Of a stretch of DNA of 64,000 nt, positions 9,916 through 47,658 are shown in pieces (the first letter of the stretch is position 1; each line of letters starts with the position of its first letter). A program made the translations under genes and the position numbers. A model generated the notes under the pieces. The model was not told the DNA's origin and ran no database searches. It saw nothing but the letters and a program-made list of their open reading frames with translations. Source of the DNA: Amphiscolops sp. MND2022 (taxonomy: Eukaryota); NCBI GenBank assembly GCA_964187785.1, contig OZ076411.1:37820001-37884000 (forward strand), written 5' to 3'.

Positions 9916-10329
9916 AGACAGACAGACAGACAGAGAAACTTGAAGTATGTTCATCTAAACATAACTAGAATAAGATGCACCAAATATCACATTTAACAAC
10001 AATAGCATTTCAGGAAACGAGCACAAGTGTTTCTATCATAAAAGTTCAAGAAATAGCTCCAAAAACTTTTCTTAGTTCCTTTTTGAAGTCATATTTGCTC
10101 AGCTTGAAGTTTAGATCATAGTTTGCTTGAAAAAAAGTCGCTAATTTCGCGCCTGTCGTGAAGAAAATTGTTTCGGTAGTTTGCCATCGGTTTGGTTTTT
10201 GTTGTATGAAGTAAGTTGTGAGACGAAGTTGGTAGTTGAACGTGTATTTTCTCACATCGAGCAGCTCATCAATGTTCATGCTGGAACTTGAACTCATCAT
10301 ATAGTGCAAGAAGATGATGTCAGACAGCT

Positions 10330-43300: not shown

Positions 43301-44153
43301 ATGATACATGCATCAGCTAAAGTACTCCATAATTCAGAGAAAGTACCTGTATCCTATTGTCGCTAAGCATCTTTGAAAAACGTTCGTAGCCTAAAGACTA
43401 CATGAATGAGTTGGAAAGATGACATGACCGCCAACAGGATGAAAAGCTGATTTAGTTTCAGTTGAATAAGTTGTAACGATCCCTTCTCATATCATCAAAT
43501 TATTAACATTTGTGACATGGCTGAAAAATTTGTTCAAATTCGAGGAACTACAATTTTTGGTCATATTACCCAAATACTGTCCGTGTCAGCGCAAAGATAT
43601 ATGAATTGCAGAGGTCGAGAATCACTAAAGCCACGGAACACAAAACGCAGATTGAAAATACTCTATTTTTGTGTTGAAAAATAACAATTCCCGAATTGCT
43701 AATCCAGCCAAGTCTGATTTCAAACTGAAACTTGTGCTCTTTTTAGCAGGATGTTAAAAAAATGTCCTAAATGCCTAAAATGAGTCATCCTGCCTATATA
43801 AACCTATGGTGCCAATACCCTTTCCTATTGCCGTGAAAAGTCATAAATGCTGTGAATTATCTTTTGTTTTATGTTTAGCTCGTGAGCTACCATTTCCCAA
43901 TTTGCTCTGACTAGAAGAGTTTATCGTTGACACCATCGCCCACGTTTTCAAAGGCTGTCTAAGCGATGATCTTGAAGAAAAAAGCAAGATGCCCGTTTTG
44001 ATATCAAATACAGACTGCAATAAGTCGGCAAGCACTCTTTGGAGGCGGAATTTTCTCCTAACGGGACAGGTTTTACCTCGAGAGGCAAAATGGACTTTGG
44101 GCACAATACGGGTACCTGTTGGGGCAAATACCTTCTTCTTCTTCTTATGGTAG

Positions 44154-44801
44154 TCACCCCGACGGGGTTCCCATCTGTTGTCCACAGCTCCTGAGATGTC
44201 TTCGGAGGTTTGTTGCAGCCTGCGGTACTTTACAAGAAGGGCATTCCTTCAGGGTACGGACGTGTTTCGTGGGGCTAGTTTTTCCTTGACATTTCTTCTC
44301 GTGATTCTTCAGATTTGCTTTTTGGCTAAAAGTTCTGTTGCATTTGGTACATGTATGATATGTTCTCGCTTGACTGTGCATTCTCTTCATATGTATTGCT
44401 AGTCCTGCTCGCGAGACGCACTGCTTCCCGCATTGGGCACACTTGATTTTTGCGGTTGAGTCCAGGTGTCCTTGTTCCATTCTGGTCACAGAACCTCCAG
44501 TCCACCCATTTTCTTGGGATGATTCCCACAGCTCTATGTGTCGGCTTCTTTCACGGATGAGGCCTCTCCATCTTTCACGATCTTGGGCGATGTCATTTAT
44601 TTCAAGGGGGTCCCAACCAGCTTCTCTCGCTAGCTTTATCCAGTATCTAGGCGTGCATCTGAATTTCTTCCTTTCTTTATCTGTGCACTCCAGTTTACTC
44701 AGCCAACCGAAAGTTACTTGCTTGGTTCTGCTTTCCTCTGGCATGCGGAGTACATGGCCCAACCGTTCTAAGCTTCTTTTCTCGATTTTATTTCTGATCA
44801 C
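44154..44801 (-). pseudogene. RTE-like ORF2 C-terminus with three zinc-finger-like motifs
   Basis: CAQC..HMKRMH, CTKC..HEKKC, CPSC..HLRSC. Confidence 0.8.
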
Positions 44802-45031
44802 AGTCCGTCCCTCTAGGCCCCGGGTTCGGATGAATGTCCCTCAAACACCATCTGATTACCATCTTCCGATGTCTGCAGTTCTCCTTTGTACCCCGGCCAG
44901 GTGGACAACAGTTTACGCCTTCTGGTTGTTTAAGGAGGTGCACGGTACGGCTATTTCCGGGCCACTCCCTTCCCAAAACAGTATTTGCTTCGAATGCTTT
45001 CGTCCTCGGAGCACGTCCCACAGTTTGGGGC

Positions 45032-45088
45032 GATGCTGCTTTTGTGAAATGCGCTCTCCACCACGAGAAGGTACAGCATCCGGGAAGC
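45032..45088 (-). ncRNA. HDV-like self-cleaving ribozyme candidate
   Basis: P1 GCUUCCC/GGAGAGC, P2 GAUGCUGU/GCAGCAUC, P3 ACC/GGU, L3 UUCUCGU; G1 is the first base inside the TSD; folded by hand. Confidence 0.75.
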
Positions 45089-47658
45089 TGGGGCAAATAC
45101 CCATATCAAAGGTTCCGCCATCGTCATGAACGGAGAAGCGACAGCGATACTTGCCTTTGCATGTAAATCACGCATTACGAATGAGCTATCACTCAGTAGT
45201 AATGAAAGTTGACAAGAGGAATAAAGTTTAAGGTTGAAGTAAGTGGAAAGTGTGAGGTGGCGACCTGAAAAACTACACCTGAGAAAAGAAACTAGGGTCA
45301 CTATGAAATATTCAATTTGAAACTTTCAAGATAATCATGGACGAAATACCTTTTTCAAAATGTTGATTCAACGTTGATAATGATCCACATCTGATCAACA
45401 GTTTCCAACATCGTGATGAAAAATTTGCAAGTGTCCTAAACCCAGACTTTCAAAGCAAGAATTTAATTGAGAAAAGTTTCTGTTGTAATCTGAATTCATG
45501 GGACTTCCATTATAGCTTATTTCGTCATAAAAGTATAACCGAGTGACGAACTTTCTTCATCCGAAAGTGCTTTACAAGAATCAAACTATTTTTGTTTTCC
45601 CTGGCTCAGTGCTCAGAAAATAAATACAGGTTCCAGATTAGCGCTCTTTTTATCTAGATGGTTGTATGTTCTAGACATTGCTAACAAATGTGTTTTTGGT
45701 AACCAAAAACGCTGCAAAGTACTTTTCATAACTTTAATCAGAAAAATTTATGCAAGAATTGCTTAAATTTTTCACGAGTTCAAAGACACACACTTGTACG
45801 ATATCCTTGTAGTAAGAAAGGTGTGTTGAAAACCATCGAGGGGCTATTATCAGGCGTCTATATTCACTTTGCGTTGATTATAAAACTTTTAAAGAATAAC
45901 AGCAAATCTAAATAAAGGTTGTCTTCGTTGTTTTTCGAATATCCTGATGATATCATTCCTAACGATCACCTCTGATGCTACGTTTGAAAATTCGTTCAAA
46001 GAACAAGGGAACTACTATTTTCAACCAGTTGTCGGAACTAGCGTCCGTGTCAAAAAAGGGACCTGTACGAAGTATTGGAAAGACCCAAAATCATAGCCGC
46101 GTAGCAGACCGAAAACAGCAGATCAGAAGAACGCTGAATTCTTACGAGAAGACTCATTTAGCAAATTTCTAATCTCACCAAGACGAACTGTGAACAAAAC
46201 TTGCATTTTCTTCAGCAAAATACTACCAATTGTATTGATTGCGTAAAATGAGTCTCTGCCTAATCAAGCAAACGGTGAATAAAATTGACCGTAAAATGCT
46301 GTGTTTTATCGTGTTTTCTCGATGTATTAGCTCGTGAGCTACTATTTCTCAATGTTCTGTGATTTGTAACAAATTACCTTTGTCACCACCATCTTCGTTT
46401 TTTAAGGCTGTCTAGACGGGATTGTGAAGAGAAAAAGCATAATTTACGTCACTAGCAACACCCGTGTCATAAGTTCCTCCATCTTCGTCTACGGAGAAGC
46501 AACGGCGACAGCTTGCCGTTACAAATCCTTGTCAAAAGATGTTTTTCTTCACTGAAAACTACGTAGTTTTCACACGTTACAAAAGTTCAAAATAAGTGGC
46601 AAAAATAGTAAAGTCAATACAAGAGCAAACGAATGTTACAAAGGCTAGTATAAAAAAGATGCACAAACGCATTTTTTTACGTGCTGTTAAAAATGTGTAA
46701 GTTTTCTCGTTTGGGACATATTGAATTGGCTTCTTATCTGCCTGTGGAAGTCGCTTAACTAGAACTGAAGTTGCTAAAAAATGAATTGTTTTGAATGATT
46801 TTCAAATTTTGCTGAACTTACCTTTTTTATTTGTTTTTTTTTGCACGTGAATTAGGTAATAGTTTTTTTTTCAATTTCGTCAGAATTAGATTTTCGATTT
46901 TTTCGTTACAAATCAATATATGAAACAATATATCTGAAAAATGTTCAACATTGTAACAAATTTGCAAAATCTGCGATTCTTGTACAAAGCCCAATAATGC
47001 ATAAATAATCACGAACATAAGTTATAATTAATTATTAATTTACAATTTCTTTAAATCACTAGATCAATTGACATATGCTGAACCAGTAGTTTCAAATGCG
47101 CTTGATATGCAGATTGAACAGAAAAGCATCGACACGTGTTACTTTCCAAAGCGTTCACGTTTTGTTTTTCGGTTCAGCTGTGATTTGCAGGGTCGTTTTG
47201 CTTGTGAACACATTCTTCCAGACAGGATTGGGTTGTTGCAAAGTGCGCCAGGCCCAAAGGTGACGACAATCATAAATGGGTTGGTTCCACGGCAAATGAG
47301 ACGGAAAAATAGACGGGAAATTAGGTAATAGTTGAAAAATCCATACCACCAGGATTTTTTCAAAAATTCGATCTAGTAAATGTTCAAATATTTACGAGAA
47401 ACTTTTCCGGCATTGTCAAAAAATGCCGTAAATGCTGTTTTGATTGACCAAATGATGCAGTTTTCTGGCACAATTCAGGAAACGCAATTTTCGAAAAATG
47501 GGTATGTCTCGGGCTTGTATACAAAGCCTGTATACAAAAATTGAAAAATTTACTGTAGCGAGAGTCCTCCATAAAACGAAACTCTCTTGAAAGGTATGCC
47601 GAATACTTGATCAAACTGAACAAAATTATGCTGTTTCTTCAAACGGAATGCTAATACA

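Follow-up and report, generated by a model that had tools for sequence, protein, structure and literature searches.

A candidate 57-nt HDV-like ribozyme without a P4 helix at the 5' end of a 2A-carrying LINE family in an animal genome

The first 57 nt of a LINE family, here called family A, probably constitute a minimal, P4-less member of the HDV-like class of self-cleaving ribozymes. HDV-like ribozymes are an established route by which promoterless LINEs free their RNA from host transcripts. One copy of family A lies on the minus strand of the window (the whole stretch of DNA that was analysed, 64,000 nt), and the HDV-like interpretation of its head, put forward in an earlier sequence-only reading, is now supported on comparative grounds, by sister folds at the exact 5' ends of related LINEs and by covariation. 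Very probably, it is by this head that the element's RNA acquires its exact 5' end, the trick already known from R2, RTE, and L1Tc; what is new is the host family and the unusually small form.

The window insertion measures 956 bp (45088-44133, minus strand). It is flanked by a target-site duplication (TSD), and G1 of the ribozyme candidate is the first base inside it. The TSD had been read as 13 bp; this length was confirmed, with the proviso that it is 12 or 13 bp because the first G may equally belong to the (AAG)5 tail, as that tail's final base. The description of the insertion as a short retroelement did not hold: by blastn comparison with longer copies, the insertion derives from a ~3.8-kb single-ORF APE/RT LINE by internal deletion and is non-autonomous, rather than being a separate kind of element. 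Its 5' ~290 nt and 3' ~667 nt are 97-99% identical to the ends of longer genomic copies (98.8% for the LINE 3' part), and ~2.9 kb containing APE and RT are missing (blastn against the longer copies L010-L013); the leader ORF stops just past the deletion joint. Splicing was ruled out as the origin of the deletion, since there are no GT..AG ends and the joint has a 2-3-nt overlap. The features of the element are as follows.

45089-45101, minus strand: upstream copy of the TSD, GGTATTTGCCCCA; the same 13 nt are found at 44132-44120
44788-44862, minus strand: leader ORF with a 2A-like peptide (ATG at 44862-44860, NPGP codons at 44826-44815); the same peptide heads the ORF of longer copies
44797-44798, minus strand: deletion joint, from element position ~290 to ~3169 of the longest copy (blastn against L010-L013)
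44154-44797, minus strand: LINE 3' part, comprising the end of the RT-downstream region and C2H2 zinc fingers (Pfam zf-C2H2)
44133-44146, minus strand: (AAG)n 3' tail, from the sequence
44120-44132, minus strand: downstream copy of the TSD, GGTATTTGCCCCA, from the sequence

Seawater metatranscriptome contigs from two runs match window positions 44135-44754, in the 3' part of the element, with 90-99% identity. The family, or the organism that hosts it, therefore occurs in RNA samples of marine plankton. The contigs found cover 44135-44754 only, with none over the element head, and contigs of this kind are unable to show RNA ends.

Read on the minus strand from 45088 to 45032, the head of the element is a 57-nt nested double pseudoknot in the HDV order P1-J1/2-P2-P3-L3-P3'-P1'-(P1.1)-(P4)-J4/2-P2', exactly as the sequence-only reading had it. 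(Base number i of the candidate lies at coordinate 45089 - i.) Its parts are listed here; unless another source is given, each was taken from the sequence.

45032-45088, minus strand: P4-less 57-nt HDV-like ribozyme candidate, whole (sequence, strict descriptor, and layout of family F; see below)
45088-45082 / 45059-45053, minus strand: P1, GCUUCCC / GGAGAGC
45081, minus strand: J1/2
45080-45073 / 45039-45032, minus strand: P2, 8 bp including one U.G
45072-45070 / 45062-45060, minus strand: P3, ACC / GGU
45069-45063, minus strand: L3, UUCUCGU
45052-45051, minus strand: G37 and C38, directly after P1'; one P1.1 pair, with C 45067
45050-45045, minus strand: 6-nt linker in place of a P4 helix
45040-45044, minus strand: J4/2, candidate catalytic C 45044 and then AAAA directly before P2' (sequence and sister families)

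A published descriptor of HDV-like ribozymes comprises a G1-Y closing pair, U..C-G in L3, and C-R-R-A in J4/2 (PMC6326823). Family A keeps the G1-Y pair (G1 at 45088 closes P1 with C 45053), the L3 signature (a 5' U and a C-G near the 3' end, the reverse-wobble U/G of the core), the catalytic C followed by purines, which fits C-R-R-A, and both P2 and P3. P2, at -11.1 kcal/mol, is its strongest helix. The deviations are an imperfect P1, a P1.1 with one pair of two, and a missing P4. P1 has five Watson-Crick pairs, one G.U, and the single C.A mismatch that had been noted before; RNAduplex and the covariance model both prefer an alternative register with six Watson-Crick pairs and one bulged G. 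The energy of P1 is -5.0 kcal/mol, versus -5.6 in family E and -6.4 in family B, and neither P1 nor P2 of family A falls outside the sister-family range of duplex energies. In P1.1 a single pair is possible, C 45067 with G 45052, and the second position would set U opposite C. As for P4, earlier called nearly absent, no helix was found when the sequence of family A was read, and the 6-nt linker stands in its place. According to PMC6326823, HDV-like ribozymes without P4 occur naturally and depend on metal ions as full-length forms do (Riccitelli 2014, cited there), and P4 is dispensable in minimal natural forms; the absence of P4 is therefore not disqualifying.

The longest copy of family A (L011/L014) is 3,835 bp long. 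The single long frame of the longer copies runs from a 2A-like peptide (MVIRWCLRDIHPNPGP) through an APE endonuclease and a reverse transcriptase to C2H2 fingers at the C-terminus, and the element ends in (AAG)n. Nine copies bear the head. Seven of them start at the same G1 (GCTTCCC) within unrelated flanks and the remaining two are 5'-truncated by 5-12 nt. Divergence from the majority base among the nine is 0.4% in the ribozyme versus 1.5% in the next 125 nt, a difference that is not significant (p = 0.08). A genome search with a model of families A and F (R3) returned nine A and five F copies and no further P4-less family among the 150 candidates scored. Older A-like copies L015, L019, and L020 are without the head.

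All nine head-bearing copies are internally deleted, each differently; because deletion-bearing copies were retrieved with the head as query, the retention of the head in them is a matter of ascertainment. The deletion-bearing loci include the window copy, L002, L004, L007, L009, L010, L012, and L013. In four family A copies the left breakpoint falls at element positions 285-297, just past the 2A codons, and a template-switch hot spot is possible there. In L013 an inverted 103-bp piece of the 3' end sits between head and body.

A six-frame search with the family A protein identified many LINE families at 24-37% identity, those bearing HDV-like folds being at 29-37%. Several of these related families have intact frames of ~1,300 aa, nearly all have an NPGP 2A motif before APE, and the sister families have in common an architecture of 2A, APE, RT, and C2H2 fingers. 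HDV-like double pseudoknots at the exact 5' end occur in no fewer than seven sister 2A-LINE families of this genome; wherever a comparison of copies could fix the 5' end, the element begins with such a fold. In family B a 75-nt ribozyme fold lies at the exact 5' end of 6-7 copies. Family D has the fold at the exact 5' end of three copies, with P1 GCUGGGC/GCCUAGU, a G.U at the cleavage site, the HDV string UCCUCGC in L3, and a P4 that is a 4-bp stem. The fold is likewise at the exact 5' end in two copies of family E (plus a variant) and in six diverged copies of family H, all of which have an A.A mismatch in the middle of P1. Two copies of family C have an HDV-like fold; their 5' end cannot be fixed to G1 because the sequence they share starts ~85 nt upstream. 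Families I, J, and K are single copies with an HDV-like fold. Family F likewise has a 57-nt form without P4, and its 7-bp P1 is perfect; four of its five copies start at G1, and its 3' half has the same layout as that of family A (GC, six bases, CAAAA(A), P2'). A model built from P4-bearing families only located the family F fold precisely (19.7 bits, E 0.002). Nearly every sister sequence has, ahead of P2', a C and then AAA or, in one copy (L076, CAAG), AAG, in keeping with the earlier proposal that the C before AAAA, C 45044, is catalytic. The exceptions are decayed copies (L066, L069, L073) and two variants, L071 (CGAAG) and L042 (CACAG).

With 150 candidates scored, a canonical model of the B/C/E type has at least 57 sites in the genome, and 28 of these 57 lie 270-960 nt upstream of an APE/RT match on the same strand. 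At one locus (G000:C4:11202735-11217277) four canonical matches on one strand are spaced by ~4.7-4.9 kb, which looks like a head-to-tail tandem array of a ~4-kb LINE plus spacer. Both copies of family G (L041:~1280-1400 and L043, minus strand) start at the same base and have P2, P3, L3, and P2', with an L3 region (ACC UUCCCGA GGU) close to that of family A, and the 5' strand of P1 is absent; either both copies are truncated at one point or the family is a variant with another 5' end. Many insertions of these LINE families, whose elements end in (AAG)n, lie just downstream of runs of GAA, GAT, or GAC triplets (flanks of L004, L036, L054, L057, L063, L070, and L072); no such run adjoins the window copy. 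In family E (L053), a PHD/C1-like zinc finger occupies ORF residues ~112-147, between the 2A peptide and APE; such a finger is known in some 2A-bearing LINEs of lancelet and sea urchin (PMC3708506).

To what extent the fold of family A exceeds chance was judged with a strict descriptor: a 6-7-bp P1 in which one mismatch is tolerated, a J1/2 no longer than 4 nt, a P2 of 6 bp or more, a 3-bp P3, an L3 that opens with YYC and contains a G, a P1.1 of one pair or more, and C-(N)-AA ahead of P2'. (A first, looser descriptor gave hundreds of matches and was far too unspecific.) In 128 kb of window there is a single match, at 45088 on the minus strand, on the first base of the element. Dinucleotide shuffles of the window give 1.15 matches per 128 kb (82 in 71 shuffles), and for this reason no significance is claimed for the fold alone. 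The probability of a match at one given base is ~9e-6, and what is non-random is that the fold begins on base 1 of the element, both in this copy and in the sister families.

Searches with covariance models, which the sequence-only reading had named as a check, did not recover family A convincingly. Rfam returned no match in the whole window at gathering scores, none in 44900-45200 at E<=10, and none for sister families B, D, E, and F. Since Rfam also misses canonical sister ribozymes, its silence on family A means little. Family H gave an end-to-end but sub-threshold match to RF02682 (27.4 bits, E 0.15, gathering score 44 bits). Of the two models made from sister sequences, R1 (families B, C, and E) and R2 (17 sequences without family A), both nested-only so that the P2 pseudoknot cannot be scored, R1 placed family A at the right coordinates with 8.4 bits and E~1, and R2 did so with 10.5 bits and E 1.4, its second-best match in the window. 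The best R2 match in the window, at 10190-10311 (minus strand; 11.4 bits, E 0.9), starts with U, leaves P3 unpaired, and has a 73-nt insert; it was taken as noise. Family D was found by neither model, although, judged by eye and by the descriptor, it has a textbook fold.

These numbers bear on the idea that an ordinary 5' UTR satisfies a loose descriptor by accident. The shuffles do yield about one match per window, Rfam is blank for family A, and an unrelated site outscores it slightly at a model E of ~1; nevertheless, accident would have to put the match on the element's first base, would have to do so again in family after family, and would have to leave the strict descriptor with no match outside LINE 5' ends in 265 kb of LINE loci, where all of its matches are at such ends. 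Chance resemblance is thus very improbable, and a ribozyme head, shared with the sister families, remains the preferred reading.

Covariation was examined in a model-guided alignment of 21 sequences, families A and F included, against 500 shuffles; model-guided alignments were used because MAFFT, applied across all families, misaligned the helices. Standard pairs fill 90.2% of cells versus 81.5% in the shuffles, 12 of 25 pairs are changed on both sides versus 5.1 in the shuffles, and none of the 500 shuffles reached any of the covariation measures. When the 3' partners are slid, pairing falls to 24-51%. P1, P2, P3, and P1.1 all covary between families, the sequences of P1 and P2 differing yet staying complementary. 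P2, with double changes in five of six pairs, and P1.1, in which family F replaces a C-G pair by G-C, provide an independent check, as neither is in the model that made the alignment. The commonest closing pair is G1-C (13 of 21, with G.U in 4 of 21), so the G1-C of family A is normal here. The sequence-only reading had looked to covariation across copies; it is present between families and absent inside family A, where the 57-nt head is nearly invariant and the nine nearly identical copies contain no compensatory changes.

In families A, B, D, E, and F (five of six families), the 2A-peptide frame is open from element base 2 or 3, inside the ribozyme, for 83-102 codons (L011:101-372, L052:76-360, L054:94-342, L053:73-380, and L055, minus strand, from element base 1), and the other two frames have 1-5 stops over this leader stretch. 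No start codon is conserved in the leader frame across families, and families E and F are without any usable ATG. Translation consequently seems to start inside the ribozyme or close to it; the sequences suggest that initiation there is independent of AUG and that the 2A step sheds the leader peptide.

Such an arrangement would also suit a structured 5' RNA with another job and no self-cleavage, whether binding of the element's own protein, a start-codon-free start of translation, or a DNA-level promoter like Pr77; according to PMC3383444, the same 77 nt of L1Tc serve as promoter and ribozyme. In R2 and L1Tc, however, roles of this kind are known as additions to cleavage and not as replacements. 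Moreover, the covariation reflects selection on an RNA fold and not on a DNA motif alone, and the fold is specifically that of HDV, with the catalytic C and the L3 core conserved and with the end-to-end match of family H to RF02682. We consider a non-cleaving role of this kind improbable, and self-cleavage by the family A head is still favoured.

Somewhat less improbable, though still unlikely, is that the head of family A is a relic, descended from an HDV-like ribozyme and cleaving very poorly or not at all, its 5' ends arising from an internal promoter (which could produce a precise 5' end) or from a few master RNAs. This would fit the P1 mismatch, the one-pair P1.1, the lack of P4, the noise-level covariance-model scores, the small number of copies (~9, all internally deleted), and the older A-like copy L049, whose head is degenerate, with a scrambled, unreadable P2/P3 region. 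With ~9 head-bearing copies, family A may be dying out, its ribozyme weakened. Weighed against this are several observations. The consensus core nucleotides are all kept except for one P1.1 pair, and one P1.1 pair is enough for L1TcRz to cleave in vitro (PMC3185411). Family F, equally P4-less, has clean helices and exact 5' ends, and the P1 mismatch of family H has been maintained over its six diverged copies. Finally, family A copies are 96-98% alike and carry TSDs, which argues that the head was in use recently.

Taken together, these comparisons favour a working ribozyme, and the following mechanism is proposed for it. As in R2 and L1Tc, transcription would start outside the element, which would thus be part of a longer read-through transcript. 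During transcription the RNA would fold into the nested double pseudoknot (P1, P2, P3, and the one-pair P1.1), C 45044 would act as the general acid, and the RNA would cut itself immediately 5' of G 45088. Given this proposed cut, the retrotransposition template would start at element base 1 and carry no flanking sequence. Reverse transcription of this RNA at a new site, with priming on the (AAG)n tail, would yield a TSD-flanked copy. Cleavage, its rate, and any second role in the start of translation are what we infer here. By analogy, the layout of the window copy, which keeps the candidate ribozyme, the 2A leader, and the 3' end required by RT, is comparable to that of RIME or NARTc.

More tentatively, and with rather less confidence than the ribozyme assignment itself, an active 57-nt P4-less form, the AUG-free open leader, and the 2A peptide might be parts of one conserved LINE expression module. 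If so, the ribozyme would be the smallest HDV-like one known from a eukaryotic retrotransposon; an uncapped RNA starting at G1 would be translated from a non-AUG start in or next to the ribozyme, with 2A 'StopGo' shedding the leader; and the same three-part logic, present in trypanosome L1Tc and in these LINEs, would be either very old or convergent. This would suggest a rationale for the ribozyme and the 2A peptide travelling together.

The window LINE has the properties of a ribozyme-terminated non-LTR element: base 1 of the ribozyme candidate is base 1 of the element, a TSD flanks it, and APE and RT are found in the longer copies. The present families would add a group of 2A-carrying single-ORF LINE families in an animal genome to the ribozyme-headed LINEs. 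The work on 2A-bearing metazoan LINEs, which places them in the Rex1, CR1, L2, Crack, and Ingi clades, has no occurrence of the word ribozyme (Odon 2013, PMC3708506), and the literature searched yielded none that links HDV-like ribozymes with the CR1, Rex1, L2, or Crack clades. Membership in the Ingi clade is not supported for the present elements, because Pfam identified APE, RT, and C2H2 domains in full-length relatives, plus a PHD-like finger in family E, and no RNase H domain. The two natural P4-less 57-nt versions (A and F) would set a minimum size for the fold in a eukaryotic mobile element. For annotators, the exact 5' boundary allows copies with a full-length head to be told from truncated ones, and the small ribozymes, if active, would be usable as compact self-processing tags.

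Ribozymes of the HDV type were reportedly described by Ruminski in 2011 at the 5' ends of R2, R4, R6, SART, Baggins, and RTE elements of insects, nematodes, and chordates. As in R2, the first base of the candidate ribozyme is the first base of the element, and, as proposed for R2, it would release element RNA from a co-transcript and help translate an ORF that has no proper start codon. Unlike family A, R2 and its relatives are site-specific, have an REL endonuclease or belong to other clades, and carry no 2A peptide, and R2-type ribozymes have a P4 and often large inserts in J1/2 or P4.

In size (~50-60 nt), in the short linker that takes the place of P4, and in sharing the same catalytic core, the family A candidate resembles the minimal P4-less HDV-like ribozymes (Riccitelli, Delwart & Luptak 2014) and the theta ribozymes of gut phages. 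These are from microbiome and phage sequences and have other functions, such as the processing of tRNA trailers, in contrast to the LINE 5' end seen here. Of the Rfam models, RF02682, the HDV ribozyme of Faecalibacterium prausnitzii, is alone in aligning end to end with a sister ribozyme (that of family H).

Closest in architecture are L1Tc/NARTc and ingi/RIME of trypanosomes, with L1TcRz contained in Pr77. In both L1Tc and family A, an HDV-like ribozyme (a candidate in family A) lies in the first bases of a single-ORF APE-type LINE whose product carries a 2A peptide N-terminally and C2H2 fingers C-terminally, and both have a single P1.1 pair (PMC3185411, PMC3383444, PMC5814959, PMC3708506). 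The likeness is one of layout, and there are differences: no RNase H domain was detected in the full-length relatives of family A, the host here is a ~1-Gb, presumably marine animal genome and not a kinetoplastid, the family A tail is (AAG)n and not poly(A), and P4 is missing. The deleted copies of family A are one-off deletions, unlike NARTc, which is an amplified family; in both, nevertheless, short non-autonomous derivatives retain the ribozyme head.
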